DNA of 64,000 nucleotides from Bispira polyomma. Its lineage: Eukaryota. The notes under the pieces are model-generated. The model had not been told where the DNA came from. It ran no database searches and saw only the letters and a program-made list of their open reading frames with translations. The translations under genes and the position numbers were made by a program. Where the stretch lies: NCBI GenBank assembly GCA_965649765.1, contig OZ287749.1, positions 1,550,001 to 1,614,000 on the forward strand. Reading direction: 5' to 3'. Below, piece after piece: positions 268-29,930 of this stretch (position 1 is the first letter of the stretch; each line of letters starts with the position of its first letter).

Positions 268-1139
268 TTACTGCCAAAACCAAACAACTAAGTAATGACA
301 AATGGCGTCCGACCTCCAGCACCCGTGTTTCTGTATATGGTGTAATTTCACGTTTGCATTAAAAGCTAGTGAAGCCCCCGACCTTCTTAAACAGTGAAAT
401 GTGTGTGCTTGTGGTACTAGACCCACTTTAAGCACTTTAAGTACCCACTTTATAGGACGGGTGAGCAGGTATTTTTTGAACAAACTTCTTGCTGAAGTTA
501 CTGGACAAAGCCATTTATTTTATAAACACGGGAGCTGGATTACATTAACTTTGGTTCTGTCCTGATTCGTTTTGGACCATTTTAACACCAGATGAATCCC
601 AGGTTCAGCAAATAATACATCAGCTTATGTAAGGTAACGAGTGGGGTCAAATTTTCCCCCACTGGTGGGAGTAAGATTCGAGATTCTCAAAAACCCAAAG
701 AAAGCAAATAATATTGCTGTCCTATAAAGTTCTGGAAAAACTAGAGTTTCACAGAATTTACAAATTTGTTGAAGTTGGACAATGTCCAGTACCCCTTTGG
801 GTTTAGGAGAAAAATTCGAATTTATGGCCAGTGATTTTTGGTACATAGAATTTCTGTCATCATGGAGTTGTGTGTTATTTATGTTCAGCAACTTACACGA
901 GTGCCTTGTTGCTGACAAATAATTGTTAATCACTTTAGTTGAAATGTTGCATTGATGAAGGGATTCCATGAAAGCCAGTAATGTGGCAAAAGAGAAAGCT
1001 TCTTGTAAATTGTTGTATACCACAAAAGCTAGAAATAATCTAAATTGTTGAGAATATTGTTTCTGAGTTCTTGGTCTTTGGCTGTCCTGTATCTTTGTCA
1101 TGGCGTCATATATCAGAGATCTCACTGCTAGTGGATTAC
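268..1139 (-). pseudogene. E1 tyrosine recombinase
   Basis: FFGFLRISNL (catalytic R), HCLRRSGA (HxxR), HGCWRSDAICHY (H/W and Y). Interrupted by a stop at 625-627 and an indel near 480. Confidence 0.92.
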
Positions 1140-1145
1140 CTGAAA

Positions 1146-4020
1146 TTATATGTCATTGTCCATTGTAAATAAGTCTGTCTTGACTTCGTCCATAATGAAG
1201 TTATTCCTTATGTCATGTTTTATACTAGAACTATAAGTACCCAAGTTATGCCACCTGGACAAATTATCTGCAATCACGTTCTTTTTTCCCTCAATATGTG
1301 TAATTTCCACATTAAGATTATTTTCAACACAAATTAGCCATAAATTTCTCAGACACATGCTTAAATATGAATCTCTTGACTTAGCCGACTGCACAACAGA
1401 AACGACAGCTGCATTGTCAGACTGTATATGAACTGACTTATTTTTGAATTGGTCAATCCAAAAACGAATACTAACTAATACACTAAGCATTTCGAAATGA
1501 ACTTTTGATAAGTTCTGCCTAATACAAGGGGGAAGCACTGCTGTAAATACATGGCTTCTGATACACCGCCTATGCCCTGCAAGCAGTCATCTACTTGCAT
1601 GGGGACAAAATGATTCATCGTGTCATTATCATATTTCTTAGTTCCATTGAATTGTATTAAGAACCTTTTAAACCAATTGAAATCTCGTTTGAATTCATTT
1701 GTTAACTCGATTGTCTTTAAACTTGTGGCATTCCTTAAGATTGCCAACATGCGATTCATAAAAATCCTAGCCGGTTTAATACATCTATTTATGTATAATA
1801 ATTTCCCAAGTAGAGATTGATATTTTTTTTTCTAACTTTTTCTAAATTCTCGAATTCTATGACTGATTCATAAATCGAATTGAGTTTATCCTGGTCTATA
1901 CTGAGGGTTTTTTTACACACATCTATCGTGATGCCCATACATGTCACTCTAGTACTTGGTGCAACGAGTTTACTTTTGTTTACTGGAATACCTAGCTGAT
2001 GCATTAATTCTTGAAGGAACTTATATGCTAAGGTAGCCCTATTTTCAGTTTCTATAATCAAAAAATTGTCTATGTAGTTAAAGACCTTAAAGTGTTTTTT
2101 TTTTTCATTATGTACTCTAAGTACTGGAGTAGGAGTTTATCATGGTAGTCACTTAAATAGTGTTTCCACATGTCTATATTCAAGCCAGAAATCAAAGGAA
2201 TTCTGGCATTTAGATAATTTGGCTGACCTGTCAGTTTTATGCAATCAACTGTGTTACATATAGGGACATTGTGGTGTGTTGAAGAAAAACCGGTCTAGTT
2301 AGTACTAATGGTCTTACACTCTGCTGGAGTGATCTATTTATAGATTTGGGGAAACCCCTAAGCTTCTAGAAACCGGTTCTATTTTATTTCTGAAGGTTAT
2401 TAAAGTTGTATTCATATGTATATCTCATCTCTGGAATGTCCTAGCGATTGCTTACACATTCTAGCAACCTTCTCTAGCAGTGGTATATATAAGGGTTGAC
2501 AGCCTAGCCACAGACCAGAGTTAGTTGAGCTGAGGTGCTATATGAACTGCTATACTGTGAAACATTTTATTTCTTCTCCTGTGGATATAAAAAGTTTGTT
2601 ATATACATTTTGTGGTGAACTCATTGGAGTGAACTGGATATAAAGTTGTGGATCTACCAGAGATTGGATTTGCTGTAAATTGGATATTGTTTGCATCCTG
2701 GACTGGATAGCTTAGTTGTGCAGACTCTCTGGATATATACATTTTGTGTTCGTGGACACTGAACAGATAACAGGATACAGGCATTGTGTGGACATTGAGC
2801 GGATCTCAAGACAGATTGCTGGATACAGTGGACAAACTGGTTTAATTGTTATTTGAGTGGACAGGACTGTGGTCAGGTCAGATTGATTTCATTATTGTAT
2901 TATTGTGTGAGCTATTAAGGGTATCTCAGTTGACTGTAATTTTGTAATTGTATAATTTTGTAATTCTGTAATTGTTATTTTATTTGTTAAATAAATTTGT
3001 TAAGTGAAACTTTTTGTCTTTTCCTGTTACAACCTCAAAGCAACCGGTAATTGCTACCGCGCTGGCTCCCGTCACCGTAACAACTGTTTTTTTCAAAGTA
3101 CTGAAATCCCTAATGTCCACAGGTTTCCTACTTGGGCCTGTGAAGCCAATAGACAAATTCTTATTTTAAATAAAACCATAATCTCTGTCATCACAGTCTC
3201 TGATTGTGTCACTACTGGATATGTCCTCACTGTCATCCCTTGTATGTTGAGATAAATTGGATACTACACAGTCAGTATTGTCATAAGTCATTGTCATAGA
3301 ACTCTTGGTGTGAGATGTGGATTTTTCGTGTTGTGATGTAGGAAAACAGCTCAAATAAGTCTGTTGACTATCATACCTAATTGTGCTGTGACTTGTGGCT
3401 GTATCTATATTGTCTATGTCCTTGTCTATGTTTTAACATATCTTATCTATAATGTCTATGTAGTATTGTGTGTTTCCAGTTTTTGTCCTAGTGTGACTGA
3501 TGTGTTCTGTTTTGTTTTTGTGTGAATGTGTGTTTTGAAAAGTTTGTGTAACTGCTTGTACTTGTATTGTTGTTTGTACATAGAAGTTCAGTGGCCATAT
3601 ATTTGTCACTGAATATTCTGTTTTATCACAATATATCTGAAATACATCATTGCAAAACATTTGATACACCACATTCATTAAATCACTGTTCTTAAATTTT
3701 AAATAATACAATTGATAACCATCATAACTAATTGCATTACTTGTATATATATCAACAGTTTCACAGTTCTAAGTCTCTTCTTCTGGTAGTCCACCAGCTG
3801 AAGCATATTTTACATTAAAACTCATTTGCAATGAGTCAAACTTGCTCGTATTAATATCATTACACAATTGTTTATCAGTTCCTATATAATTTTGAATGTC
3901 ATTGCGGAAATTTCTGTCTTCATCATTAACCCTATTTGTATTAACCAGACTTTTACTATAAACGTCATGTGCGAATTCAGATACCTTTGTACTAGTTGGT
4001 TCTGTGTGCAGTCGACTGTC
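1146..4020 (-). pseudogene. E1 pol (RT / RNase H), disrupted
   Basis: RNase H motifs QVDDCLQGIGG, HFEMLSVL, SDNAAVV, HIEGKKNVIADNLSR. RT motif YIDN (YIDD in E2). Solo LTR inserted at 2252-3082. About 0.5 kb of the RT core is deleted near 2115 (LQYLEY joined to IM) relative to E2. Confidence 0.9.
2252..3082 (+). mobile_element. Solo LTR (Gypsy-type, 831 bp) inserted in E1 pol
   Basis: Ends TGTTAC...GTAACA. 4-bp TSD ACTG at 2248-2251 and 3083-3086. Internal TATATATAAG (~2484) and AATAAA (~2990). Removing it restores pol homology (DFSTLKKTV-DCIKLTGQPNYLNARIP vs E2 VANIIRATGTPNYKVARFP). Confidence 0.88.
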
Positions 4021-5174
4021 CTATTGTTGGGTCGTTCCTACTGTCGGCGTTTTCCCATGTAACTTAAAACATTTGGTTTCAGGATGTGTGTTTTCCTTTT
4101 TGTTGAAACAATAGCAATTTGCACAGATGTGTTTGAAGATTGTAGTCGAATTTTATTGGTCACCCTCTTGTGAGCATTGCCCCTTTTGATAATGGCGACA
4201 TGGCATTCAAGACTTTGTAGCAGTAATAGTAGCTGAGGTTGAGATGGACGCTTGTGAGTAGGAGAGCCTGTTAAGGCTCCATTTGTTTTCGTCTCCCCAC
4301 CCTAGTCTGCCCTCCTCCACATCGTGCATATTGCTGGCGTATGCGGTGCAAGCGACTGGCCATGAGATATTGCCGGCATCGCGAAGTGTGTCTGATAACT
4401 GCTTCAGCATAGCTCTAGCGACGTTACTGTTTCTAACTTCTATAATATTCTGTATCTGCCCCGATGCAAATTGTGTTGCTGATAGGTTGTCATAAGATGG
4501 GTGTTTTTATGGGCACCAGCTAAACAGCTTTCGTTTGGCCATCTGTATATGGGGTCCCTAGTACACATGTCTGAGGTGTTGAAACGCCCCGAATGCTTTT
4601 TCTGATGAAGCTTACCCTGTATTATGTCCTCTGCTGCCATGGACTCATACTGTTTCAATCTGAAATTGACCTCGTTCTGGACTAGTGCAGAGTGTCGTAA
4701 TACCTCTGGTGTGGGGTGAATGTCCCGTGTCGAATCGTCAGACCACTGTTGAGTAGGAGCAGGGTGTGTTCGACGTGAAGCACTAGTCTGGTGAGTTTGT
4801 GTCGACCAAAAGTCGTCAACACGTTGTGGTGTTCCGTATGGATCAGCCCTTTGGTTCCAGTCATCCTGGTTCCATGAGGTGGTGAGAGGGTTCGTGTGTC
4901 GAGCATGTTTCGGCTGTGCTGGTGTTTAATGTGAATTGTAGTCTAATAAAGGGTTACTACCTTGAGTGTCGTTGGTTTCATCGGGTTGGTCAGAAGATCC
5001 CTTACCCGTGTCGTGTTGCGAACGAGTATCTGGCTGTCTGTTTCTTTTCTTCATCTCGGACATATCTTTCTCTAACCTTGCTACAGTGCGAACCATCATT
5101 TCAATCATGGTTTGCTGGCATTTACACATATCTCGAAACATCTCTATCACACTTTTTTGTATAAACTTTCGCAC
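4021..5174 (-). pseudogene. E1 gag-like ORF (frameshifted)
   Basis: Homologous to E2 gag (WPNESCL, MLKQLSDTLRD, HDVEEGRL). C-terminal Cys/His cluster CRHYQKGQC...HICANC...HPETKC ends in CAA-TAG at 4026-4021. Confidence 0.85.
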
Positions 5175-5359
5175 ATACGATGTAAATCACTTCTCCCAAA
5201 AACATACGGTTAAAATATTGGGATTAAAATAACTAAAAACATAAAACTTGTAAAAATATAATATAAAATTCAGTTTTTGTCAATATGGCGTCTTAGCCAA
5301 GAATTTTTTACTTGTTTCCACCTTGGTTTCTTATTAATTAATGACAAATTTACAGGAAA

Positions 5360-5465
5360 GGCGGGAAACTCTCGACCATGGACGCATCTTGCTAATTAGG
5401 TTTACAGTAATGTGTGAAATTTTACCGACTGACTTGCCATGCTTCTCGCCCCGCAGTGACATACA
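5360..5465 (-). repeat. E1 direct repeat, 5' (A1-like) copy
   Basis: Matches 1-133. The element 5' end on the minus strand reads TGTATGTCACTGCGGG. Confidence 0.9.
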
Positions 5466-5990
5466 TAAGCCGACGTTGTCAGTTGGATTGTTTCTTTACT
5501 CCAGAATAGCAAGCAGTGGATCTTGGCTACTGTGTTTTGACTTTTCATAATGTTTGTCACTGTATTGTACGTTCAGCAAGTCCATTACTACATGGATAGT
5601 ATGGCGACGATGTCACATGCTGAAATACTGAAGTATTGAAGGTGCTGCACGCAAGTTGGTTTTCACAATTTGTTCTAATGGACGGTGGTCACTTTCAAGT
5701 AGTACAGCTTCTGTTAATGTCCATGTATTAAATACATCTCTTGATTCCTGACCAAGATACAAAAGGAAATAGTAACATTTTTCTTCATCAGTACTTTTAG
5801 AGAGAGGTTCCGCCAAACAAAGCTTTATGGTGTGTGACCTTTTTTAAGAATCTGACAAGTTGAAGATTTGAACTTTCAGGTCTTAAGCCATCCACAGTTG
5901 TTTTTGCTTGATTTGTACAACAGAATTATTCAGATTTATCTAGCAATGAGTCTGGCTGTCACAATATGACCTAAGGTGTTGGCAGCCATG
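5466..5990 (-). mobile_element. Heavily deleted Gypsy/Ty3 LTR-retrotransposon remnant
   Basis: ORF 5613-5816 fuses gag-like EEKCYYFLLYLGQESRDVFNTW to the Gypsy RNase H motif LESDHRPLEQI. Confidence 0.6.
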
Positions 5991-6288
5991 TAGATTCCAA
6001 CGAAATCCTATTGTTTTCTGATTCATTCCTTATTGTGGGCAAGTTGATTAGGTCCTTGTGGAGACTGGATTGTCTATAATGCATCAGCCCTGGTTTTCCA
6101 GTGAGCGTTAAATTTGGCCACCATGATAGGACGTTAAAGGAGGCTGTTAAAAGTGACCTAAAATCAAACTCAATTCAAACATGAAGAAATGAACGGGATT
6201 TAAACCTACATTGGTGAGAGGCAGGTGATTGAGAAGCTAACACGTCCAACTTCAAGGCATCAGAGTCACAGTTTAGAGTTGAACTCCT

Positions 6289-6521
6289 TTAACCCTTTAC
6301 GATCCCAAGAGTAAACTATCACCTGGAATTGAAGACAATTTCCGGGTAATAGGTTACAGATAGCTGGAGTCACTACAACGTACACTACAGACTATTACTG
6401 ACATTTAATAATGGCCTCATGCATAAAACTGGGAATTCTGCAGTACTTCCTTTGCAAGGAACTAAAGGAAAAGATAATCATATTTTAGTGGTGTCGACTG
6501 CTTGCTGACAGACAAAGGTTC
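6289..6521 (+). mobile_element. piggyBac-like non-autonomous element (copy 1)
   Basis: Begins TTAA-CCCTTT and is homologous along its length to 49010-49253 (taataggttacagata, ggagtcacta, ggaactaaagg, gtgtcgactgcttgc). Confidence 0.55.
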
Positions 6522-7369
6522 TGGTAGTAACATATAATCTCCGTGGTAGCCCACAATATAGCTGTCAAAAAGGTGAAGTATGTAGAAGCTCATCATTGTT
6601 ACTTTCTGTTTTCTGCTGTAGTCTCTAAAGAGGTTGGATACTCTGGGAGAGAAAATACTATGAGAAGTACAGCCAGTGCAGTTGATGTTAGTTCTATAGC
6701 AAATGTATCTGGGCACAGATGAATATTGTTTGTGTATGTAAACTACACCACTCATGTAACTCAGAGTAACAGCATCCTCCTGTGAAAATACTAGGATCGA
6801 AGACATGCTACACACACCCACAAAGCTTAGTTGTACTGCTGATGTTGTTTCATAAATATGTTATAGTAGGATATATATATGTGGTTTAATTTGATTAAAG
6901 CAATTAAGGCTTTTTGTAATCCAGTCTTTTTTCTGTTTTAATTTTTAAATAGTCATTCCTTGATTAAATGGGAAAAAGCTGAAATGAGTCTATTATCTGA
7001 GGTAATTGTAAATACAAAAAGTCCAACTGATAAACACGGTGATATGCTGTGAACATACTGCGCCATCAACTCACTGTGTCTTTTTGTCAACCATTTGAAG
7101 TATGGGTGTTGGATTCGAATCTTATGAAGTGTTATTTGTGAGATCTGATTGGGTGAGGGGTATCAACAAACAGCTTTGTAATTCGTTGCGTGGTCCTGAA
7201 AAGGACTTTTTGGGGGTTAGAGCTACTGTGACATCTCAGGCTCGGGGTGGCTTCTTATCAGGCTCAGGTGGTTAGGCTCAAGTCAGGCTCAGGTTAGGTT
7301 CAGATCAGACTTCATAGTCGGTCATTCTACCACTGGACTACCCCCTCATTCATGAAATAGTTCATCAAA

Positions 7370-8330
7370 GTGTTCCTTAACTCTTTCACCCTTCTAGATA
7401 GATTTCTATTTTCATTGGCTAATTCATCCCCCAACAGCTGCGTCTCAGGCTCAGGCAGATCATCTTGTGTAATGTTTGTGGCTAATAAAAAATGTTGTTA
7501 CATGGTCGTGAGTAGAACCTGGAACCTACTGACCAATATTCTGAAGGCATTTTCAATCCTCCTATCCCTAGAGATTCTGTAGTTGCATATCCTTTGAGTG
7601 TTAGTGAGTTCTCTCCTGGAATAAGGTTTTATTAACCAGGGCATCAGAACGAAGGCGTCGTCCCCCAGTAGGCAGTAGTTCACATTATGTCTGGATCTTT
7701 CAAATAGTGGTTCAGGTCTCGGCAGCCTGATGGATCCGTCTTCCAACTTTTGTTTCAGTTCCTAATGGTTAAAAATTTGAGCATCTGAACAAGAACCATG
7801 GCATCCAAGGTCCACCAAAATTAATCTTTAGTCACCATCAACCACAGGACTAACAGCACAATCGAATGGAACCATTTGTAGTTGTGATATTCACTGCCAG
7901 CCTTTCGAGGTTTCTTGATGGCTGCATGTTTCCCACAATGGAGGTCACAGCATAAGGGATGTGACATCTTTTTCTGCATACTTCTTCAAGTTTCATCCAG
8001 TCTGCGAGGAAGTTGGGCTGGATAGATTTTCTGCCTCGTATTCTTGAGATATGGATTCTTGCAGATCTCTAGGACGAAATTGCTGTTCGTAGATTTTTCC
8101 ACCCTGAATTGGTAGGAGAAGGAACCGTACTTCTTCCCAGTGGCCAGGTGCCTCAAGGTGACTGCCAGTTTAAGTTCCACATCCAAGGGCTTTCTGCAGC
8201 AAGTTGTGGTTCTTTTCCCATGGGGTGTGATCCTCTCCTTGATTTCCAGGAATAGCTGTGAAGGCAACCTGAAGAAGTTTCTGTATGAATTTCCATTCCA
8301 TTCCATTCCCTTAACTCAAAAAAAAACAAC
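7370..8330 (-). pseudogene. PIF/Harbinger DDE transposase remnant
   Basis: YRNFFRL..., KLAVTLRHLATG..Y.S.SYQFRV..ST, LLGDDAF..MPWLIKPY, NYRISR.RR.IENAF.ILVSRF. Multiple frameshifts. Confidence 0.88.
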
Positions 8331-13650: not shown

Positions 13651-14633
13651 TTAAAAAGTAGTGGTAGAGACAATAGAGGCAAAAGTAGATGGTATAATGG
13701 AGGCTGCATGGGAAGTAGCCTGCAAATAAGACCAAACAGCATCGGATTTCCAACACCCGTGTCTTTGTATATCCTGAAGTTTGATATTTGAATTGAAGGC
13801 TGAAGAGGCTCCAGAACGACTGAAGCAATGAAAAGAATGGCCATCTAAAGGAATGTTAAGATGACTGAGAATGTTTTTAAGTGTAGATCTAAGTTTAGAA
13901 TCTGAGAGGCAGAGGCCTTTATCTAAAGGATTGGCCAGTAATGAGGCCATGGAGGGTAGGGGATATTTCTCGAACAGAGATGTAGAGGCTCTGACTGGGC
14001 ACAACCAGGGGTTTGTAAGTGAGGGTAATTGAATGATATCTGGGTTTTTCCCACCCTGGTTAGTCTTACTCCATTTAAGGATAAGATGTATACCTGGGGG
14101 GGCGAAAACTATGTCAGCCCTAGTAAGGTGTCTTGTAGGGTCAAAGGGGGAGCCAGAAGTACTAGTAAGGTTGGAGATCCTTAAGAAGCCAAAGAAGGCA
14201 AAGAGGAAGGCTGTCCTGTATAGCTCAGGAAAATGGAGAAGGTCGCAGGCCTGTGAAATTCTGGATAATTGATGGAGATCAAAAACTCCTTTGATTCTGG
14301 GAGTGTATTAGGTGGTGAGTTCTAGAGATCTAGTGTACAAGATTAGCCTAGGGTCATACAGGCCTGTGTGTTGGAAATTAAGTAATTTAGCATTGTGTCT
14401 CAAAGCGGACAAATAATTTGCAATTACTTTGTGGGATATACCTGACTGGGTAAGGAACTCTAGGAAGGCCAATATAGTATTGAAACTAAATGTGTGTTGT
14501 AGGTCATAATACACAGTGAAGGCTAAGAAAAGTCTGAATTGACTGTTATATTGTCTCTGGGTTCTGGGTCTGTGACTCTGACGCAATCTTGAGAAGGCAC
14601 CCTGGATCAGTGAGCCCGCTGAGTGAGAGGTGC
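13651..14633 (-). pseudogene. E2 tyrosine recombinase
   Basis: One frame from 14631 to 13651 with a single premature TAA at 14310-14308. Motifs FFGFLRISNL, KWSKT, CPVRA, HCFSRSGA, HGCWKSDAVWSY. Confidence 0.93.
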
Positions 14634-14639
14634 CTGAAA

Positions 14640-17277
14640 TTAAAAATAATTATCTAATGTAAAGAAAGTGAGAGGAATGTCAAACATTTTAAAACTATCA
14701 ATGATAAAGGACCTAGTGTAGTCATCACAAGAGTCAGGTTCATACCAACACGAAAGTGTGTCAGCGATGATATTGTCCTTACCTGGGATATGGCTAATAA
14801 CAAGGTCAATATTTTCTGTGGCACAAATCTGCCAGAGGTTCCTCAAGCATAGCCCTAAGTAGTTATCTTTAGTCTTAGATGACTGCACCACAGAAACCAC
14901 AGCCATGTTGTCTGACTGAACCTTAAGTTTTGGTTTTTCCATTTGTGACTCCATAGTTTCAAGGCAATCAAAATGCTAACCATTTCAAAGTGTACGATTG
15001 ATAAAGTATGGGTCAAGAAGAGAGGTAGAGGAGTTTTGAACACATTGTTATTCCATATACCGCCAGTGCCTGATAAGCAAGCGTCCACCTGTAGTAGGGC
15101 ATCATGAGGTTTGTTAATGTAGTTATAAGTGGTAGTTCCGTTAAATTGTAAAAGAAATTTTAGAAACCAGGCTAAATCCAAATGGAAATCGGTGTTGAGA
15201 ACAACTGTATTACTACTGGTAGATTGGCGGAGCAGAGTAAGCATTCTGTTCATAAATATAGGGGTTTAATACATCTGTGTATATATAGCAATTTTCCTAG
15301 TAAAGATTGATATTTTTGTTTACGTACCTTTCTTAAGTATTGGAACTGTACACAAGTATCGTATATGGTATTCAGTTTATCCTTGTCAATACTGAGCGTT
15401 TCAGTGGTGATATCAATAGTGATGCCCATACAGGTGACACGTTTACTGGGAGGGACTAATTTTTTAGAATTAATTGGGAGACCTAGATCTGAAAGGGTTT
15501 CTTGTAAGGTGTTGTAAGCTAAGGTGGCCTTATCCTCAGACTCTACGAGTATAAAATCATCGATGTAGTTATACACTGTAAAGCCTTTTAATTTCATAAT
15601 ATAAGTGACACAATCTGAGGCCATCATAAAGGCCGCCGTGCCGTGTGTTAAGCCAAAAGTAAGAGTAAGATCAATGTAATAATTATCTTTCCAAAAATAT
15701 CTAAGTTTAAGGCAGTCATAAGGGTCAATTCTGATATTGCGAAAAGCGTGAGAAACGTCCACTTTCGCTAAGGTGGCCTTAGGACCGATGGACAAAATGA
15801 GAGAAGTGATTTGGTCAATAGTTGGAAGTTTAAGGTTGAAATTAATGTGGTCATATTTGGTTTTGACTGTGCAGTCATTAACAGATTGTCCTGTTGGATG
15901 GGAAAGGTTTAGTACTAATCTTCGTTGATCAGTGTCCTTGGGGACAGTTAGCAAGGGAGAACAATGTAAGTCAGGGTGGAGATCACTATTAATGGGGCCA
16001 ATTATGGTGCATCTGTTTACCTCAGTAACGAAATATTTGTCTATTGCCTGAGGGAAGGCTTTGGCTGAATGATGATTTTTTACCTTTGTGACGTGGAGTC
16101 GATCTCTCTCACGCAAGGAAATGGGAAATCCAAATTCCACATACTGTAAAATAATTTTGTCAGGGTAGTCAACCAAATATTCTTTCCACTTAGCCACATT
16201 AAGATTACTCTTAAGTGGAAAACGTGCTACCTTATAATTAGGAGTGCCAGTGGCTCTAATAATGTTGGCTACCTCTACAAGTTTATCATAGGAGTCAATG
16301 TTGACCTCTTGTCTAACAGGACCCACAAAGGAAAATTTGTTATAATGGTAAGGAATGTAATCAAAGGGTTTACTTTCAGTGACCAAATAGACCTCTTGTA
16401 TGTTGTTGTCTTTAGTAAGTATGTGAGAGCATTGTGATGGAAGTTCTTGTGTTATAACGTCCTCAAGAGCTGCAAGTGAGGTGTGTATGGCAGTGGTATT
16501 ACAGCTGGGAGTGTGTTTAATGTGTGAAAATTTTTCAAATTTTTTAGTGACAGGTTCTACCTGAGCTTGCTTCTGCTGGTCAAGCTTGCAAATGTTATCT
16601 ATGATGTCTGTATAATATATGGTGCTACCCAAAGTAGTACGTGTATGTGAAGTAGTTCTGTATGAGCCACCTTTCTGAAGTCTGTTCAGAGAGGTGACCG
16701 TAGCACAAGGTATTCTGGTCAAGACTGGGATGTACCCAGAGCTCTAATAAGTTATTGGCCAAATTTGTTGTAATGACCAAGAAGAGGGCTGGAATAGCCA
16801 GCTACCTTGTACAAGACTACACACATAAACGCCAGAGAGAGATACATCCTGTCGACATGCAAGGTAACAAAAATTTGTAAATAGACAGTTATCCAGACTA
16901 CAACTGAGATACATATCAAAAGCTTTAAAGTCCCAAAAATAGTCTTTACATGTGCTGTCCAACAGGTTAGAAACTGTAGCATCTGAATTAATATCTACAT
17001 TAAAACAATTTCTCTCAGTATGCATACTGCCAGAATAAATATTATCACAATTTAATGATGCCTGCGATGCACTGATCCTGCTATCTACAAGCAAATGTCC
17101 AGTACTCTTAAACTCAATGTGATCACTCAAGCTAGGGGTAAAATTATGGTTCTCATTATCGTCTGACTTAAAATTTTGCTTAAACCTATGTCTATAACTA
17201 ACACTGTTCTTCTGACTCATACTATATACACTATCTGGTTCGCACTCGGTGGTGGTGACTGTGGGCAGTCCGTGGTA
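14640..17277 (-). pseudogene. E2 pol (N-terminal extension, RT, RNase H)
   Basis: RT motifs RRLVLNLS, AKVDVSHAFRNI, FGLTHG, NYIDDF, CMGITID. RNase H motifs QVDACLSG, HFEM, SDNMAVV, HIPGKDNIIADTLS. In-frame TAG at 16746-16744 and frameshifts near 15255 and 14935. Confidence 0.93.
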
Positions 17278-18546
17278 CTATTGAGTCGGTGTAGGTGTTG
17301 GCGCGGGGCGACCATGTAGTTTAAAACATTTCGTTTCTGGATGGGGGTTAGACTTTTTACTGATCCGGAAACAATTCGCACATATATGTTTAAATAACAC
17401 ATTGGTGCCCTCGTGGTCTTTCTGATGCTGGCATTGACCCTTTTGATAATGCCTACACAGAATTTCTTGTTTAGTGGATGCAGAAGGAGTAGAATTCGTG
17501 GGAGCGTTGCTGGTGACTAGTGCTTGAGAATAAGCCTGTTGAGGGTCCACTTGGTCTCGTTAAGCCAGATGAGGCGACCCTCTTCGACATCATGCATGTT
17601 GCATGCATATGTTGCAGGTGTCTCTGAGGGTATCAGCTAGTTGAGTGAGCATAGCCCTGGAGATGGTTGGATTTTTGACCTCTAAAATGTTTTGAATCTG
17701 CCCGGCAGCGAATTGGGGTATGGTCAAATCGTCAAAGGAGACCCGTTTCTTATTAATGCCAGAGAGACAAGCCTCGTTGGGCCACCGTTTCATCGGGTCG
17801 GAGACGCACACATCCGATACGTTGTAACGCCTAGACTTCTTCTTGGTGGCTAGCTTACCTTGCAGGCTTTCGTCGGCTGCCCAGGCCTCATAACGGGCAA
17901 GACGGAGGGAAACCTCATTCTGAATCATAGAGGACTGCTTGAGGACATCGGGTGTCGGTACAATGGCATCATGTAGAGCCTGCTGTGTGTTGTCAGTACT
18001 CTGGAAACCTTGTGGCTGACCTGATACAGGAGGTTGAGCGTAAGGTGAGTGCATAAGCTGAGGAAGGTTTCTATGGACGTCATACCCGGGTACACTGAGA
18101 GGACCTTGAGTAGTGAATCTAGGATCCTGGTCTAGCTGTGTACTATGCACTGGTACGTGAAGCTGAGTAGTAGTTGTAGGACGGGGCGCGACGGAAGCCC
18201 CTGCTATGGGCAGCTGAGGAGCTGGAGTCTCGGGCCGACGAGACTTGAGGTCAGAAACGTCCTCTTGAAGTTTAGCTACGGTTGTGAGCAACGTTTGCAT
18301 CATGGCTTGCTGTCTAGTATGTATATCACGGTAGAATATATCAGAGGTAACTTTATCAGAGAAATTACTCACAGAATCACCGTCCAAATAACTAGCTGCT
18401 CCTAAATCTTGGCCTTGGGGAAGTTCCACTTCAGGCGGATCGGATACTCTGTTGCATCTAGTCCCGACCGGTCGGGGATGAGAGATGTCACACTTAGAAC
18501 ACATAGCCATATTAATGGCAAGTTGCTTCTTCTTTCCTCTGCCCAT
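17278..18546 (-). pseudogene. E2 gag-like ORF
   Basis: Start context AAA-ATG-G at 18546 (MGRGKKK). N-terminal CSKCDISHPRPVGTRC motif, heptad-like LLTTVAKLQEDVSDLK, C-terminal CRHYQKGQC...HICANC...HPETKC. Small indels at ~17535-17610. Confidence 0.85.
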
Positions 18547-20135: not shown

Positions 20136-20138
20136 ATA

Positions 20139-22510
20139 TAACATAACATAACATAACCTAACACATAGTACTTATATGGTGCCTATTACATAGTGTCTCT
20201 ACGCACTGATAATTAAACATCATAAGCACATTAAAAAGGTATGCTTTGAGCTTTTTTCTAAATTTGGGTGGTGATTTTGACGATCTGATTCCACAGGCAA
20301 CTTGTTCCATAAAGTAGTTGCAGCACAGACAGAAGACCAATCACCAATCATTGTTGTTTGGCACTTTGCGAGGGTATGACAATTTAAGACTATTTGAGGC
20401 TGTTGTAAATCTACCCAGCTCTGAAACTGAGAGAAGTTCACTGATGAACTGTGGTCCTAATCCATAGACAGACTTGTAAACATATGTGAGGAGGCTAAAA
20501 GCAATCCTCTCCTGGAGCCAGTTGAAGCTGTTTTCTGACTTTACTGATGTTGTAAAAAAAATCAGTTTTTCGATGACATGAACAGCACAATTGTACAACC
20601 TGTTGGCTTTTTAAAAAGGTCTTGTTAACTCAATACAGTAAATAATTTGCATAATCTAGTTTTGATATCACCAAGCCTTGAATGAGACCGGAACAGATAG
20701 ATATTTTCGAATCCTTGCCATTTTATAAATTTGGAAATGGCAGGCCTGCATTTGTTAAGGATAAACTCATCCATATTTAATAAAGAGTCAAAATAGGCAC
20801 CCAGGTTGCGGACAGAGTTTGTCGTAGGAATTGAGCAATCACCCACTTTGATAGAAATAGATAGTATTTGTTTCATATAATGTCTAGATCCAAAAATAAT
20901 AACTTCTGTTTTGCCATAATTCAGCATAAGTAGATTTTCCAACATCCAATTTGTTATGTCCTCAATGCAAGATTAAGGCATTGAACAGTTCCTCCATTGA
21001 ATTGTGGTCAAAGTTAACATAAAGTCATCTGCATAGAGCATATGTATGCCACTGAAGAAACATATAGAGTAAACAGTATTGGGCCCAATACACATCCCTG
21101 AGGAATTACAAATGTTTTTGCAGATGTTCTGTTTTTTATCCTAACTGTCTCAGTTCTGTCTGAGAGGTAGGATCTGAATTTAAAGCTTTGCTGTGTATAC
21201 CAAATCTAGTTTTTAGACGATTCTGGAGTTCATTGTGGTATATGGTGTCAAAGACAACACTCATGTCAAGCAGTACTAATGCTTCCATCTTCTTGTTGTT
21301 GATTGAAGTTAAAATGTCGTTTTGAACATGAAGTAAAGCATATTTGGCAGAGTGAAAAGGTCTATATGCCGCCTGCATTTTACTTCATAGGTCCAAATGA
21401 TCTAAATAGGTTCTAAGATGATTTGCAACAACTTTTTCAATCACCTTTGATAGGGAATGGCAAATTTGAGACAGGTCTATAATTTTTGGAGATTTTTTTA
21501 TCAAAATTTTTTTCTTAGATTTCTTAGATTTGTTGGAAATGTTTGCTCTTCCAAAGGTTTGTTGACAATTCTAACAATCACATGAGCCAAAATGTCTTGT
21601 TTGCCTTGGTTAACTTTGTTAGAAAAGGATCTTGAATTGCAGAAGCATTGGAGCATGTGATGATTATTATTCTTATTTCATCTTCATCTGTTGACTTGAA
21701 AGTCATCAGAGCAGGATTGAGTTTCGAAAATATTTTTTAGTGGTCTCAACATCAGTATGCGAAACAGAGTTATAGATAGCATCTCTTATTTTCACTATCT
21801 TGTCAATGAAGAATCTATTGAAGGTTTTAGCTAGGATTTGATCAGTTTTTTGTTGTCTATATCTTTTAACTTTCGATAGTAGGGATATTTCATGACTGGG
21901 TCAGGCTTCTTGTTTATTAAGTACGTTGCCACGAAGTATTGATCCGAGATTTCTGACAGATACAGAACTAAGTAGCTAGTCACATTCACGAGCAATAACA
22001 AGGTCTAAACAGTGACCCTTGATATGTGTTAAGGGTTTGACAAGTTGTTGCAGATTTATACTGGAGAGAAGGGTTGAGAAGGTGTGTGTTTGAAAGCAAT
22101 TTTTTTCATCAAAATGAATATTGAAATCTCCCAATATAAGCACAGAGTTCGGAGAATTAGATGCAGATGCTAAATAGTCACAAAATTCATCCATAAATGA
22201 GTTAAAGGTAAAGCAATTTGTGACACTTGGTGGAGGTCTATTCAGAAAAGTAACACACACAGTTGAGGCTTTTAGTTTTAGGTGAAATTCTTGACACCTA
22301 AAAGTTCTGAACTTCTGATAAGTAGCTTCTTTAACACTGAGTGGGCTCTTGTAGAGAAATCCAATACCACCCCCACTTGAACGAGATCGAGGACAGTGAG
22401 GGAAAGAATATCCACTAGGAGTAAAACTGCTGATATCATTACAGGAAGACAGCCAGGTCTCAGTAATGGCTTAAAAATTAAAATCTATGTCAACTAACAA
22501 GTCAAAGTCC
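20139..22510 (-). mobile_element. L2/CR1-clade LINE, decayed
   Basis: APE motifs AITETWL, LILGDFNIH, THIKGHCLDLVI. RT motifs QAAYRPFHS, ALVLLDMS..FDTI, YADD, LNYGKTEVI, VRNLGAYFD. 3' (TATGT)n tail at 20139-20165. Confidence 0.85.
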
Positions 22511-24714
22511 AAAGGCATGTGGTTTGAGCATATGTACATGTTATCAAAAACAAACTCGTTGCATATTTCTTCTACACTTTCAGCAGGTATGCATTTAATT
22601 TTATGCAAAATTTTCTGATTAGGAAAATTACTACGACACTTATCTTTATAGATGATGGGATTTTGCATTTTATTAAATCTTTTTCTGTATTGAGCATATA
22701 CCAGGCTTATTTTCTCCACCTAGAAGTATAACTTTCATCCCTTAGCAATCTTTTGATTCAATTCATTTTAGCACTTATAAGTATACTAAAAATATCTGGC
22801 CTTCTAATTCGACCTAAATGATACTCTGCCATTACAGTTTCTTTTCTTTCTTTTTTTTTTGTTTTGTGTGGGTTTTTGTCCCACAAGAAATTAAATAACA
22901 TGCTGTCTTTTTTATCTCGAATGTTGGGTGGACAAAAACACATAGACAATAGATGGCTTATCTGAGGTATAACCATTATTTTGTTTGCTGTAACTTTCAC
23001 TTTCCCAGATAAATTTCTAAATATCCAAATATGTATGTAGAATATTTTAAATTTTTTTGTCAAAGTTTAATCTGGTCATTTCAGTTTGATCATGGGAGAC
23101 CAAACACCTACAGTTTTAAAAGCTGTATAATTCAAAGAGATTTTTTTCAGTTCCTTTGGGAATCTTAGGTGTTTTTACTTGTTTGCACCCAAAGGTATAA
23201 TTACTGATTTGTCTAAATTTATCTTGATTTAAGAATTTCAGTTTGTAAAGCTATTCAATGTTCAGATCGAAGTACCTATTGATGCAATATTACTTACGAA
23301 TAGGGTAGTGTTATCTGCCAACTGACAGATTTTGTATTCATAATGTTTTACCTTTATTCTGAAGATTAATTTATTTCTCTGTATGTTACTTGCCAAAACT
23401 TCACCTACCAATATAAAAAGCAGAGCAGATATCGGGCTGCCCTGCCTTATGCCTTGGCTTAAATTAAAGTACTAAGACAAGTAACCATTGTTACTCACAC
23501 ATGATCAAATATCTTTGTACATAATTGGAATTCATTTAATGAAATTCTCACCAACTAACAGTAAATATCAATTTAAGTTATTTGTTTTTGCATGTGTAAG
23601 AATATCTTGTACAATTCTTACATTTTGTCCTATATATCTACCCTTAACATATTCTATTTGATCATTATCTATCAGTTTTGCTGGTACTTGTCGAAGAATA
23701 TTTCCCAAAGCCTTGGTCAAAATTTTATTATCAGTATTAAGTAAGCTAACTGGCCTCTAATTACGTAAGAGGCTTAGGTCTTTCCCCTCTTCAGAAATCA
23801 TTTTGATTATACCTCTCCTTTGATCAGCTGACAATTTGCCAGTTATAAAACTGAAGTTAAAGCTATCAACAAATAAGTATTTTAGGCTTTCTGTCTTTAC
23901 TCTCTCTATAGCCTCCCATTCTGATTTATTTTTATAATATTCTATCAGTTTCTCTTGGTGTTCTAATATTTCTTGTTCTAGAATTGTAGTTGTCTGAGAA
24001 TTGACCTTTTTTGAGTATGTGATCGTTTTGGTTTGTAACTGACAAAGTCCCAAGGAATATTCTTATCTTCCATGACAATCTGTTTTTTTAATTTTCTGTA
24101 AAAACCTCCTCTACATTTTTTCACGTTATGTGAACTGTATTTGATCTGGATTCCATATATCTACTATGGATAATTCATCCAATAACCTTTGTAACCATTT
24201 TGTATTTTGAGAAGTGGTTACTTTCATGCCGCCTTTCTTGTCTAATTTGTTATTCAACTGAGTGTTGAAATCATCTGCTATAATCAAATTACTTGCACTA
24301 TAAATTTCAAGAAATTTCTGAAGTCCTGTCTTAAAGTAGATTTGATCTTTTTAACAATTCTTTGTGGGTGCATAAATGTTCACGAGAATGAGTGGTGTGT
24401 TTTCTATTTTACAGGAATCCAGTAGTATTCTGCCTTCGAGATCTTTTGTTTCTGTTATTAATTCAAAATCAAAGTTGAAGTTTTCTGGAATTAATAAAGC
24501 CACCCCTTACTCTGAGTTGACTCATTTGAAAAATAAATGTTGCCTCCCATTCTTTTTGCCATTTAACTTTATCTTCAAAAGAACCATGAGTTTCCTGTAA
24601 AAAGGTAATACCTACATGTGACCCGTTCAGCCAGCTAAAAATGTTTTCTCTTTTCTTTTTATCCTGTAGCCTCCTACAGTTGAAGGAGTTAATAGTTACA
24701 CTTTTAAGTGCCAT
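22510..24714 (-). mobile_element. Tx1/L1-clade LINE ORF2, decayed
   Basis: APE start SFNCRRLQDKKKRENIFSWL...FLQETH. RT motifs QRRGIIKMI...RPVSLLNTDNKILTKAL, GIRQGSPISALLF, QLADNTT. Confidence 0.85.
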
Positions 24715-26169
24715 TTATACTTTATACTAACTAATAAGATCAGTCTTTTTATTTTCCTTATGTATTCATAACAGGCTTTATACATCTTTAAAATCTCATT
24801 GAGAAATAACAAGGAATAGTAATGCACACATGACACAGAAACATACATTAGCTAATATACATAAAAAAAAAGACTCGGAACTTGTGGTATGATAAAATAA
24901 TAGTTTGTAACTGTTTAATATAATTATATACTCTGACAAAAATTATGAATGTGACTTTTTAGAAAGATCGCTAGATGTTATCTGAATAGCCGGAAAGTTG
25001 GAAGTCTATATATATATGTATGTTTTTATATATTTTTCATTAATTAATTTGTAATAAGCCATTACACAAATTTTAACACATTTTTAAAGATCCTGCATTC
25101 CTAAAGCGTCTTGTTATAGTATATTTTCATAATAATGGGTCTCTAAACTTATGTCAAGTTTTTTTTTAGCAAAACACGCATGAGTCTGAACACATTTCAG
25201 TTATATAAAGCTTTACAATAATGGCTATAACCATTAATGTGGCATATAAGTGCCATCACTGAAGATTATCTTTATTGGGATTTATAACTACTGGATTTGC
25301 TGCATTGTTGCAATTGGACATACAACAAATTGCATCTTACTTCATATTATATTGGTGACCCATTGACTTACCCTTATAGTGTAGCTAGTTATGGGAATCT
25401 TAGACTGATAAGCCAATAGTCAGAAGTTGTACATGAAACTATGTGTACTTACTTATATGTGTATATATTTAAATTCCTATAGGCCTTTGCTTCATTTAGT
25501 CTTTTGACTTTATTTTCATATTGAGTCTATAATTTTTTAGGCAAAGCATACATAAGCTTTAATACATTTCAGTTATATAATATTTAACAATATATGACCA
25601 TTTGTGATAAGCCAACAGACAAATTAGGACATGTTTTGAAAGATCCTTAACAACTAAAAGGTTTTCCAAAAGTTTGTTTTCACAAGTAGTCTTTAAAATT
25701 TATTTTTCATCAATAAGCTGTTTTACGTTTCGAACCAATGTATAGTAAATTTTTCTAGTAACACACTGTTTTTGTAATATGGGACTAGTATACATGTATG
25801 AGTCAATCTTTTGCAACGAAACAATTATAACGTACTAGATCCGACCTCAGCGCATCTTTAGTCTGTCAGACCTCTGCCACTATCATTTCCAGTACATCAT
25901 TGCCAGTTTTACTGAAACACTATTTGGTAAAATAACACACCTGGGATCAGTAAAATACTACTTACTTAAGCACTTTGTAGCATATTAACTTATGAATAAA
26001 ATAATACTAGCACACCAGTATACCTGCATTAGTTAATCAGTAAAGATGATACAATTATAATATACTAGATCCGACCTCATTACATTTCTAGTACATCATT
26101 ACATTTCTAGTACATAATTACATTTTTAGTACATTATAACATTACATTTTTAGTTGTTGTTTTTAACGT

Positions 26170-26588
26170 CTTAGGTTATAAGATTCATTGGTGGAAGAAA
26201 GCAATGCCAACGCACTGTAAATCGCCACCAGTGACCTGTGACATGATTTGACCCATTTGTAACGTGCCTAATTGATGCCAGGCATTGTCTAAAGCGCAAC
26301 ATCAATGACAAATTTGTGATATCAGGGGAATGGAAGGTGGAGGGGGTAGGGTTAGCAGAAAGATGGAGGGTGGAGAGATGGGTCTTAAGGTTGTGACTCA
26401 AACCAGACAGGGTTTCCTGGGATATTATATTGGCTGGTAAATTATTCCATGGGGTCAGTGATGCAACAGAAAAGGCCTGGGGGCCAGTCCGTTTCCTGGT
26501 TCTGGGATAAAACACTGAAATTCCTTTTCCTCCTGGTAAAGCTGCTGAAAGACAACAATGTGCAAGGTAGCCCGAAGGGGCTAGTAGG
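26170..26588 (-). mobile_element. L2/CR1 LINE 3' fragment
   Basis: GPQAFSVASLTPWNNLP...LKTHL, followed by a 3' stem-loop-like sequence (gcgctttagacaatgcctggcatcaattaggcac on the minus strand). Confidence 0.7.
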
Positions 26589-27009
26589 GTCAGTGCTAGA
26601 AGGGGTTTTTAAAAAACTATTCTGGTCTGCATGACCTCAATGGCCATTGGCTCTCATTAACCCAATTAGACAGCTAATTCCCGCCAAATAGCCTAAGGGG
26701 TTCACTTTTATAATTGAAGTCAACAAGGCAACACGCCATTTTACTTTTTACTTTCTACAGTGAATCAAGGATCATATTGGAGTGTGATGGACAACCTATG
26801 CTTTGATATATGCGAATATTGCTCTGGCTTTGATGTTGGGAGCAAAAAATTGAGGGACGTAGCCTTTATATTTATTCTAGTCATTAAACAAAGTAATTTT
26901 ACATCTATAGCCTTATATCCGCAGATATCAAAGTACGGTGTTTATATTATATATTTCAGTGTACTGACTTCAAGAAACTAAATAAAACTGTGATAATAGT
27001 GTCAACGAG

Positions 27010-28314
27010 ATGGCACCACATAAACTGTGGTGTGGAACGAAACACACCAAACCTATTAACTTACAATGCCCTTGGCAGGATGTAGAGAGTGAGAGTGAGG
27101 ACAATAGTAATAGCAGCACCATGTCATCGGCGGAGGTGAATTTGCTCATATTACAAGAACTTAAAGACCTTGGAAGTAGAATGTCTAAAGTTGAGAAATG
27201 GGTAGAAACGGACAGACAGTGTGTTAATTCCCCCGTTCAGAAAGTGGCTAGTGTGCCTATAAGTCTAGAACATTGTGTTAGTAGCACACAGGTATAGCCA
27301 CAGGTGGGAGGAGTGGCTCAGGCATTTGGCAGGCAGCAGGTGATGCAGCAAACCCAGGATTCACAGGCATTTGGCAGGCAGCAGGTGATGCAGCAAACCC
27401 AGGATTCACAGGCATTTGGCAGGCAGCAGCTGATGTAGCAAACCCAGGATTCACAGGCATTTGGCAGGCAGCAGTGATGCAGCAAACCCAGGATTCACAG
27501 GCATTTGGCAGGCAGCAGGTGATGTAGCAACCACAGGAGTCTCAGGCATTTGACAGGCAGCAGGTGATGTAGCAGCCTCAGGAGTCTCAGGCATTTGGCA
27601 GGCAACAGAACCGTTGGCCCACTGATTCGGATGACCTGGTGGTTCCATCTCTCCTGACGTTGAGGTCGGACCAGCTCCAGAGGGCAGTGGACACCAGAGT
27701 AAAGGACCTTCAGAGAATCAACGAGACAGGTAATTTTAAGTCTCAAAGGGGGGGTACAGAGACAGTCTGGGTAAAACAACAAGTCTCTTGGCCTCAGAAC
27801 TTCATCCTAGGGGATCAAAGTAAAAACCGTTTGTCTTATGATAGCCTGTCAATGGCCCAATGGATTTCTGGCTTTAGTACTATAATGAGAGAAGAGTCAA
27901 ATTTAGATACAAAAAATGCTATGTTGGAGTATCTCTCAGAGATAATGGAGGATTGCCATGATTTTAGCTGGTCAGCTGCCAAAGGCAGCCATGCCGTCCT
28001 CCTATGTAAAATGGACGAGGGCAAAGGTGTCTTGGTCAGAAACTAATAAGATCGACAGAATTAGAAGAGCTCATGCTCAGAAAGGTTCGTTCCAAAACTC
28101 AACTCATTCTCAGGTTAGCAAAAATGGACATAGTAAGAGCATGCCCTGCAAATATTTCCAAAAGGGCACTTGTCCTCAGAAAAACGACCACGAAAACAAT
28201 GGCAAGCTCTATACTTATGTGTGTGCAGCCTGCTCTGCTATAGGCAAAAATTTTCCCCACCCTGAAAAAGATTGTAGGAAAAGCAAGGCTAATGCAGCTC
28301 CAAAAAACGACTAG
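27010..28314 (+). pseudogene. E3 gag-like ORF
   Basis: N-terminal WCGTKHTKPINLQC, WPQNFIL, SYDSLSMAQWISGF, SWSAAK, C-terminal CKYFQKGTC...VCAAC...HPEKDC. Several stops and frameshifts. Confidence 0.85.
27319..27605 (+). repeat. 45-bp minisatellite within E3 gag (~6.5 copies)
   Basis: Unit caggcatttggcaggcagcaggtgatgcagcaaacccaggattca. Confidence 0.92.
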
Positions 28315-28619
28315 GGCACTGCAAAACGGCAGTGCAAGCATAAAACTCGGCATTTATACCAGGTACAAATAGTCAGGCATGTAGCAGAGCAGGCTTCACT
28401 TTGTCTAGAATCATTGCAAATTCTGAGGTTACCAACATGAGTAGTGACAACTGGAGATCTGACTGGGCGAGATTCAGTAGTAAAACATATGTATAGGTCG
28501 TGAAACAAAAGCTCTCGAGCCCTAAACAGGCTAGTAAAAACTCAAAACACAGAGAAGTAGTTCAAAATAAAAAAAATGATCCCCAGTTGTCACACCAGAA
28601 AGGTTGTAAATAAAAAATG

Positions 28620-29091
28620 TATAATGTATGTCACAGATGAAATTGAGCTTGACGCCTGTTTAACCGGCTTAGGAGGTAGATGTAATAACATAGTTTATAC
28701 AAAAATCCTCCCCCTTAATTATCTGGGAATGAACATTGCCCATTTGGAAATGCTCAATATTTTGGTAGCCTTACGACTCTGGAAAAACACTTGGAAAGGT
28801 AAGAAACTAATAGTACACTGTGACAACCAGGCAGTGGTCACCATCTTGAACTCTGGCAAAACCAAGGACCTAACTGTGGCAGCCATTGCAAGGAACATGT
28901 TTATGGAAATTGCAGAATCAGACATAAATCTAAGGCCAGTACACATTTTAGGCAAATTGAATGTCGTAGCTGACCTCCTATCTAGATGGCACAAAACTCA
29001 AGAACCAGACATTAAATTACAACAAATAATACCTGAACCATACTGGGTGGAGGTTCAGGATGAATTACTAATTATTGACTGGGGTATGTAA
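28620..29091 (+). pseudogene. E3 RNase H domain
   Basis: ELDACLTGLGG, IAHLEMLNIL, HCDNQAVV, HILGKLNVVADLLSR. The RT domain upstream is missing. Confidence 0.9.
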
Positions 29092-29101
29092 TTTATTTCA
29101 G

Positions 29102-29930
29102 ATGTCTCGCCGCTGGTGTTGCAACTAGCTGGTCAGGCTGCACATACAGCTAGGCAGGCCTTTAGGCCTGCCACTCAGCAAGCCTATCAAACCATGTTCA
29201 GGGTTTTCATAGCTTATACTATAATTGTAAGTGCCAATATTACACACATTTCTCCCATTTTATTACTTTCGTTTCTACAGGTACTGGTAGCCAGTAAAGT
29301 GTCGCAGCCCTCTATTGCCAACTATCTGTCAGCAATAAAAGCTAAACTCAGCTTATATGGTATAACTGTGGCTGTATTTGCAGACCCTCGTATCAAGTAT
29401 TTTCAGAAGGCACTTATCTTACAAAAACCTTTAGAGCCAGAATTAACAAGGTCATTGACATTCCCTTGCTTACAGAAGTAGTAAAAATCTGTCATACAAT
29501 GTTCATGGGGCAAATCTTCAAGGCTGCTTACCAATTAGCCTTTTTCTCTTTTTTAAGAATTTCAAACTTCGTTCCTCATACACTCAGTACGTTTAATCCA
29601 TTAGAACAGCTTGCCAGGGCGGATGTGCTTTTTGCTCCCCCTGGATTGCAAGTAATAATAAAATGGTCCAAAACCCTTCAGGATAGAAATTCAATAAAAA
29701 TTATCAAGGTTCAGGAATTCAGTACTCTGCCCTGTGGCAGCAATTAGAAATATCTTAGCCCTGTCAGACGTTCAGGGGCCACACTGGCCTTTAATAACCA
29801 TGTTCCAAAAATTCAAAGCCATGGCACATGGACTTCAGAATGGAAATATATTACGAAAGATATGAAGCTTCCGACCAAGTGGCCACAGTTTTTCAAAACC
29901 TACTTTCCAACCCTACTCACCAACTTGGGT
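29102..29930 (+). pseudogene. E3 tyrosine recombinase (frameshifted, internally deleted)
   Basis: SIANYLSAIK, FFSFLRISN, IKWSKT, LCPVAA, GATLAF, HGTWTS. Confidence 0.85.

Follow-up and report, generated by a model that had tools for sequence, protein, structure and literature searches.

Ngaro retrotransposons have been described, in a survey of tyrosine recombinase (YR) retrotransposons (PMC6681497), in Xenopus (PMC9210276), in fungi (PMC3783388), and in Cafeteria (PMC8547959), as elements with three open reading frames (ORFs)—gag, reverse transcriptase (RT)/RNase H, and YR—and split direct repeats. In these papers, the YR is a separate, overlapping, or "frameshifted" ORF, and overlapping or frameshifted ORFs are all that the literature searched offers on YR expression or dosage. 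Introns or splicing are mentioned neither there nor in further papers on YR elements in nematodes (PMC4157794) and on the mechanism of DIRS-1 (PMC7192593). In this report, we focused on a 64,000-nucleotide (nt) stretch of Bispira polyomma DNA (assembly GCA_965649765.1, contig OZ287749.1, positions 1,550,001 to 1,614,000 of the forward strand), hereafter the window, which holds three Ngaro-like copies, E1, E2, and E3. An earlier reading of this stretch, the original prediction, had proposed that a hidden intron with a 5' splice site in gag and a 3' splice site before YR, both in phase 1, removes the C-terminal part of Gag and all of pol. Our comparison with divergent relatives supports this core idea. 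It is highly probable that the conserved acceptor is a functional 3' splice site used for YR expression, and likely that its partner is a donor in a Gly codon of the gag linker, giving a Gag-N–YR fusion. The window copies resemble described Ngaro in their domain order, lack of a methyltransferase, gag-like ORF1, and (in E1) terminal direct repeats, and differ from them in that YR is read here as the second exon of a gag-initiated mRNA.

The identity of the copies was established by reading both strands in three-frame translation. E1 (~5465 to 1) and E2 (~18900 to 13650) are on the minus strand and E3 (~27010 to 30000) is on the plus strand, all with the gene order gag, RT/RNase H, YR. Pfam matches to RVT_1 in E2 (E = 1.2e-10) and to RVT_3/RT_RNaseH in E2 and E3 place RT and RNase H in one pol ORF, while Phage_int_SAM_1 matches the YR of E2 and E3 (E = 1.3e-5 in E3). 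What follows pol is a YR and not a DDE integrase, and its HxxR and C-terminal Tyr align. With only 4-8 nt from the RNase H stop to the YR acceptor in E1 and E3, and 5 nt in E2, there is no room for a methyltransferase, whose absence sets Ngaro apart from DIRS1-like and PAT-like elements. Terminal direct repeats are present in E1 (1-133 and 5360-5465, 91-96% identical); their 3' copy (1..133, minus strand) is cut by the window edge. Because of the missing methyltransferase room, the E1 repeats, and the domain matches, we class E1, E2, and E3 as decayed Ngaro-like YR retrotransposons (order DIRS). None of the copies is intact, and all are dead. In E1, the gag ATG and the zinc-knuckle part are missing, gag is interrupted by an in-frame stop, and most of pol is gone, its 5' half being replaced at ~4000-2300 (minus strand) by non-homologous low-complexity sequence, through deletion or insertion. 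In E2, gag and RNase H are frameshifted, and YR is cut short by a stop (14310-14308). E3 has lost its RT and has 8 stops between the ATG at 27010 and the donor, an interval in which a 45-nt unit repeated 6.5 times in tandem (27319-27608) breaks the gag frame and disrupts exon 1.

The six splice sites proposed for these copies were found on both strands at the positions and with the motifs claimed, all in phase 1 and with the junction peptides expected. E2, the most complete, has a proposed exon 1 (17859..18546, minus strand) that extends without stops for 229 codons + 1 nt, from the gag ATG at 18546 into the linker Gly codon, of which it includes the first base. Its 5' splice site AAG|GTAAGC (17853..17861, GT at 17858-17857, codon context CAA G|GTAAGC) is the top-scoring GT of gag. 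The proposed intron (14634..17858) has the predicted 3225 nt and holds the Gag C-terminal part (a KSxR..WPNE core and a C-terminal zinc finger), RT, and RNase H. It would end at the 3' splice site TTTCAG|GC (14634..14653, AG at 14635-14634), in which the RNase H stop TAA (14642-14640) lies inside the T/A-rich tract. The YR exon that follows (13651..14633) encodes a SAM-like N-domain, matched by Phage_int_SAM_1, and a catalytic domain with HxxR and Tyr present; it is broken by the stop at 14310-14308 and has no ATG in its first 30 codons. In E1 (minus strand), the 5' splice site is AGG|GTAAGC (4610..4618, GT at 4615-4614, codon context CAG G|GTAAGC). The RNase H stop TAA (1148-1146) is followed by TTTCAG|GT (1140..1148, AG at 1141-1140), and YR exon remnants span 271..1139 (open 1139-628, frameshifted 519-271). 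In E3 (plus strand), the 5' splice site CAG|GTAATT (27727..27735, GT at 27730-27731, codon context ACA G|GTAATT) is the top-scoring GT of the gag segment. The acceptor region (29066..29101) contains the predicted branch-point-like TACTAAT (29066-29072), the RNase H stop TAA (29089-29091), and TTTATTTCAG|AT (AG at 29100-29101), and YR exon remnants, matched by Phage_int_SAM_1, span 29102..29999 (open 29102-29478, then frameshifted).

Some claims of the original prediction needed narrowing. The in-frame fusion extends from the gag ATG only in E2, whereas the E1 and E3 donors are only locally in the gag frame. The acceptor directly follows the RNase H stop in the window copies and three relatives, but elsewhere a spacer of up to 251 nt intervenes. 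The N-terminal CX2CX3HX2PX4C motif would be kept in the fusion in E2, but E1 is without it. Finally, the YR ORFs were said to lack a start ATG, which is the case in E2, but E1 has an in-frame ATG at codon 13 of the YR exon (..DAM-TKIQDSQRPRT). Moreover, three decayed copies alone are weak evidence and do not convince. E3 contains within its YR coding sequence, in a region that aligns with other YRs, a splice-like pair GTAAGT...TTTCTACAG (29227-29280, 54 nt, in frame), showing that such motifs do arise by accident and serving as a warning control. It is because of 22 further loci that the signal goes beyond chance.

These loci come from searches with YR sequences. The catalytic part of the E2 YR found 3399 YR relatives among 1.8 billion representative proteins (best E = 9e-51). 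DNA of six elements was obtained from ENA assembly ERZ22147071 (labels L001, L029-L032), and a YR-alignment scan gave 27 metagenome contigs (L002-L028); a scan of viral contigs turned up no relatives, and no contig appeared human. The YRs are ~27 to 90% identical to the query. Including the window copies, 25 loci hold the YR N-terminus, and 14 main-clade gag genes could be compared (E1-E3, L001, L004, L005, L007, L011, L013, L014, and L029-L032). As for their ends, a search for direct repeats, which are of the split type (A1 ... B1 A2 B2) in Ngaro, gave none in E2, L001, or L029 with the settings applied.

Conservation and phase of the acceptor across family members, which had been suggested as a check, could thus be assessed. 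In 25/25 loci, a pyrimidine-rich tract ending in YAG lies shortly before the conserved A.RP.T region of YR and is in phase 1, meaning that a codon begins with the G of the AG. Examples are TTTTATATTTTCCAG|GT (L004), TTCCTTTTCTCTCGGCAG|AC (L015), and TTGTTTGTCTTCCAG|AG (L017). Position -3 is a pyrimidine at every locus, and the 20 nt upstream contain on average 14.0 pyrimidines, against 10.2 +/- 2.6 for all AGs of the same loci. To avoid a choice by eye, the best tract of each start zone was also picked by a frame-blind script under a 12-nt AG exclusion rule; 19 of 22 picks were in phase 1 (binomial p = 4.2e-7 versus 1/3). At 24 of the 25 loci, no more than 3-29 codons separate the opening of the YR frame from the AG downstream. 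That the tract is instead a replication signal, i.e., a primer or recombination site, might be entertained in view of how poorly Ngaro replication is known and of the conserved homopurine primer tract of long terminal repeat (LTR) elements. We find this extremely unlikely: the tract is pyrimidine-rich on the sense strand and irregular in sequence and length, it lies upstream of YR and not beside a terminal repeat, and it is in every case closed by a YAG whose codon phase is fixed, which is a need of 3' splice sites and not of primer tracts.

The relation of YR to pol is as variable as the acceptor is constant. Between pol stop and AG there are 4 to 251 nt across families, and, counted from the pol frame, YR is in frame 0, 1, or 2 according to family. 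In-frame stops occur just upstream of the acceptor, with a YR-frame stop 3-10 codons before the AG in many loci. A fixed frame, an overlap or single stop, and a slippery site, as expected of programmed frameshifting or readthrough, are not what these loci display, and the variable frames and spacers indicate that frameshifting, readthrough, or a Pol-YR polyprotein is not the general mechanism. It is accordingly very improbable that YR is made without splicing, from full-length RNA by frameshift, readthrough, or termination-reinitiation, with the T-rich stretch as mere coding sequence or spacer. The YR of E3, which shares the frame of RNase H and is separated from it by one TAA, would suit such expression, but spacers of up to 251 nt contain stops, the YR frame of E1, E2, and L001 opens no more than 4-8 codons ahead of the AG with no slippery heptamer, and both the phase-1 YAG with its -3 pyrimidine and the conserved GGT in gag would be left unexplained. 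Two further candidates were considered and rejected: a -1 frameshift from RNase H (no slippery site, an overlap of only 4-8 codons, varying frames) and a short intron from the end of RNase H (only 4-10 nt from stop to AG in the window copies, and an intron of 18 nt with G|GTATGT at 29084 of E3 as donor).

A YR exon delivered by splicing would need no start codon, and few have one. Just 4/25 loci show an ATG in the 13 codons that follow the AG, and 6/25 have one before the AG, in the brief open part of the frame, which is about chance level; L001, L004, L005, and L010 have a full-length open YR exon with no early ATG. Neither an own YR ATG nor mismatched phases, either of which had been named as grounds for abandoning the original prediction, is therefore the rule, since most relatives lack an early ATG and the phases match. 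YR proteins in databases do start with "M", but that of one protein (P0006) is actually TTG, an artefact of bacterial-style gene calling. Another YR ORF, on a 1155-nt contig (P0033, Logan SRR20820736), has a 20-residue N-terminal extension starting with Met, which resembles a translated pyrimidine tract and not exon 1. A DIRS1-like element adjoining L031 (10413-14990, minus strand) has a YR that starts with its own ATG (MAPRATAIKEQGF...), unlike Ngaro-like YRs.

The donor is conserved as well. In 14/14 main-clade gag genes, the linker after the second conserved helix carries a Gly codon that reads G|GT(A/G)A (11 genes) or G|GCAAGT (three genes), which answers the suggested check of donor conservation among family members. 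The sequences are G|GTAAGC in E1 and E2, G|GTAATT in E3 and L005, G|GTAATA in L007, L013, and L014, G|GTAACG in L011, G|GTAAAA in L004, G|GTAAAT in L032, G|GTGAGT in L031, and AAG|GCAAGT in L001, L029, and L030. In other words, the Gly codon is GGT in 11 and GGC in three genes, never GGA or GGG, and is followed by AA in 13 and by GA in L031. Six conserved Gly columns elsewhere in gag, used as a control, have GGT in 15/46 and GGA or GGG in 18/46 cases. The flanking residues are variable: Q, S, N, H, T, or E precedes the Gly, and K, N, or E follows it. Ranked with a rough 5' splice-site weight matrix, which serves only to order sites within one gene, the linker site is the top-scoring GT of gag in E1, E2, E3, L005, L007, L013, and L032 and is within the top three or four in L004, L011, and L014. 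The GC version (L001 4705-4711; L029 and L030 6379-6385) has been kept in three copies with Gag N-terminal parts only 54-84% identical, and AAG|GCAAGT matches the usual strong consensus of GC-AG introns.

Could a real acceptor have another partner, such as a donor located early in gag or in the 5' leader or, in hosts with trans-splicing, a leader of that kind, with YR starting at its own or a non-AUG codon? The evidence for the acceptor is stronger than that for the donor, a few YR exons do have the early ATG counted above, and gag contains other phase-1 GTs (L004 has five of similar score). Nevertheless, the remaining YR exons require that exon 1 provide an AUG in phase 1, a leader ending in AUG would call for phase 0 instead of the phase 1 found in 25/25 loci, and the linker site is the only phase-1 donor kept in all 14 main-clade gag genes and the best in seven of them, which makes another partner unlikely. 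Outside the main clade, L015, L017, and L018, with a YR ~30% identical and a different Gag N-terminus, keep the phase-1 acceptor. At FSSK-G-T, further downstream in their gag (L015 2717, L017 1460, L018 657), they share an invariant AAA G|GTACG among varying neighbouring synonymous positions; as the only conserved phase-1 donor candidate of this clade, it may tentatively be viewed as an alternative donor.

Pairing the linker Gly donor with the YR acceptor would give an in-frame fusion. In eight elements with gag and YR on one contig, for which lengths and frames were counted and the exons searched separately, exon 1 is open from its ATG and ends in phase 1. Exon 1, intron, and exon 2 measure 126 codons + 1 nt, 3272 nt, and 325 codons in L001; 137 codons + 1 nt, 3441 nt, and 320 codons in L005; 187 codons + 1 nt, 3108 nt, and 323 codons in L004; 169 codons + 1 nt, 3926 nt, and 324 codons in L007; and 368 codons + 1 nt, 3150 nt, and 326 codons in L032. 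In L013, they measure 182 codons + 1 nt and 2597 nt, with exon 2 open for 256 codons, and in L029, 126 codons + 1 nt and 3092 nt, with exon 2 open for 242 codons; E2, with the exon 1 and intron given above, has an exon 2 broken by one stop. Introns are thus 2.6-3.9 kb long, and five of the eight elements have an exon 2 with 320-326 open codons. We infer from these open frames, matching phases, and conserved signals that the spliceosome uses the two sites and that they are partners.

Exon 1 is not just a leader, since it contains conserved modules. Gag homologues share a C-x2-C-x3-H-x2-P-x4-C motif, a helix, a variable stretch, and a second helix (P..LR....Q..V..RL..LE), followed by the poorly conserved linker and then a KSGR..WP(Q/H)E core; in 11 families, the C, C, H, P, and C are invariant and the P..LR....Q..V..RL..LE block is conserved. 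An AlphaFold (AF2) model of E2 exon 1 built from the 11-family alignment has low overall confidence (predicted template modelling score, pTM, 0.22). It shows a hairpin at the Cys/His motif (residues 13-24), a 40-residue helix (63-103; predicted local distance difference test, pLDDT, 80-91), a disordered stretch, and a helix (199-228; pLDDT 86-94) that ends at the exon boundary, which would put the donor at a natural domain border. The coiled coil mentioned in the original prediction is a guess, and the proposal that the shared N-terminal part brings YR into the Gag particle by co-assembly is a conjecture.

Several observations count against the splicing scheme. On the acceptor side, the window copies have the weakest pyrimidine tracts of the whole set (9-12 of 20), three locus pairs are near-duplicates, which somewhat weakens the p value of the blind pick and leaves its result unchanged, and an ATG soon after the acceptor in E1, L007, L008, and L032 means that YR may have its own start in some families. 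On the donor side, the linker alignment is unreliable, so that "same codon" means the same position between two conserved blocks. The L031 frame is broken just upstream of the donor, and L015, L017, and L018 have no linker donor site. Gly followed by Lys or Asn may be under partial protein constraint, and the avoidance of GGA and GGG over ~8 independent lineages is, by hand calculation, a modest signal (0.61^8 ~ 0.02). No fusion protein was found among the best 150 representatives of the E2 YR catalytic search of 1.8 billion proteins (all <=420 amino acids, aa), nor among the best 120 matches of a YR profile in 5.8 billion (284-353 aa); a search with the L001 Gag N-terminal exon returned only ordinary Gag ORFs (<=317 aa) and no fusion. 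Among the matches listed, the two YR searches gave only YR ORFs of ~280-420 aa, and the E2 Gag N-terminal exon had no match among proteins of 201-638 aa. This silence is weak evidence because databases consist mostly of ORF calls on genomic contigs.

Finally, donor-like and acceptor-like motifs are common, and E1 and E2 are so closely related that their agreement counts once. Together with the accidental pair in the E3 YR, this speaks for coincidence combined with protein constraint, whereby G-K/N in gag and I/F-S/T-G/D at the start of YR would simply resemble splice sites. Such a coincidence strikes us as highly implausible: the nucleotides are conserved at both sites and the surrounding residues are not, in-frame stops just upstream of the acceptor mean that this stretch cannot be Pol-derived protein, the choice of Gly codon differs from that in the control columns, and the blind acceptor pick has p = 4e-7.

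The splicing scheme makes a simple proposal for how live members would express YR. The full-length transcript would be spliced at low efficiency. The donor, G|GTAA or, in a single family, G|GCAAGT, would split the Gly codon of the flexible linker that follows the second Gag helix, and the acceptor would be the pyrimidine tract and YAG between the pol stop and the first conserved YR residues. The spliced mRNA, starting at the gag AUG, would encode the Gag N-terminal module (CCHC-like knuckle, long helix, linker, second helix) joined to a complete recombinase. Splicing would thereby supply an AUG to YR, which lacks a start codon in most families, and would set its amount well below that of Gag. 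For the module carried over, nucleic-acid binding, multimerisation, or recruitment to a ribonucleoprotein (RNP) are guesses. The relation of gag to pol is also suggestive. In E2, the two are in the same frame, separated by a single stop (TAG, 17280-17278), and pol has no early ATG; the same holds with a single TGA in L004 (1562-1564), L005 (1122-1124), L007 (3007-3009), and L013 (1317-1319). This suggests that Gag-Pol may be made by stop-codon readthrough. Hence a tentative picture, for which there is almost as much to be said as against it, of a single translation start, with Gag made by termination, Gag-Pol by readthrough, and YR by splicing, the common N-terminal module acting as a shared address tag that would take both the structural protein and the recombinase to element RNA or cDNA. 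Such a scheme of expression is not known to have been described for YR retroelements.

If the splicing scheme is correct, it would explain the missing YR start codons in many families. Gag and YR would be one two-exon gene, which changes annotation, as ORF finders give a 320-aa "YR" with a false start where the scheme predicts a fusion protein of 450-700 aa whose N-terminus would bind nucleic acids or oligomerise. Junction reads or the junction peptide would also offer a simple handle on the activity of a class that abounds in many animal genomes and has been little studied, and another retroelement would have arrived at retrovirus-style use of suboptimal splicing. A Gag-YR splice fusion is not described in the open literature searched, outside which lie the founding Ngaro descriptions (Goodwin & Poulter 2004; Poulter & Butler 2015), so that priority may lie elsewhere.

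Beyond the three copies, the window contains three tandem arrays: a 77-nt satellite with 52 copies and strong negative GC skew (32735-36704), a 147/294-nt array (43780-44872), and a 20-nt array with 47 copies (55775-56712). There is also an RVT_1 reverse-transcriptase fragment of another retroelement (40947-41369, plus strand) and an intronless 692-aa ORF with C-terminal NHL repeats (49404-51479, minus strand), possibly a TRIM-NHL-like host gene or a retrogene.

The mechanism proposed would operate in the manner of retroviral subgenomic splicing. Among known systems, the nearest parallel is the env gene of avian sarcoma/leukosis virus, which is expressed from a subgenomic mRNA with a donor in gag, so that the gag AUG and about six gag codons are fused to it in frame. 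The layout proposed here is the same, with a gag-internal donor joined to an acceptor before a downstream gene and use of the gag AUG. However, the avian product is the envelope protein of a retrovirus, whereas here it would be the integration enzyme of a YR retrotransposon, and 126-368 codons with conserved modules would be carried over instead of about six. Looser parallels are provided by foamy viruses, in which Pol comes from a spliced mRNA with its own AUG and is not fused to Gag, and by copia and BARE, in which splicing removes pol to raise Gag and not to make an enzyme; in these, a suboptimal intron sets the ratio of structural protein to enzyme, instead of or beside recoding. The gag/pol arrangement of E2, L004, L005, L007, and L013, one frame with a single stop, is in turn like that of murine leukaemia virus, in which Gag-Pol is made by stop-codon readthrough.

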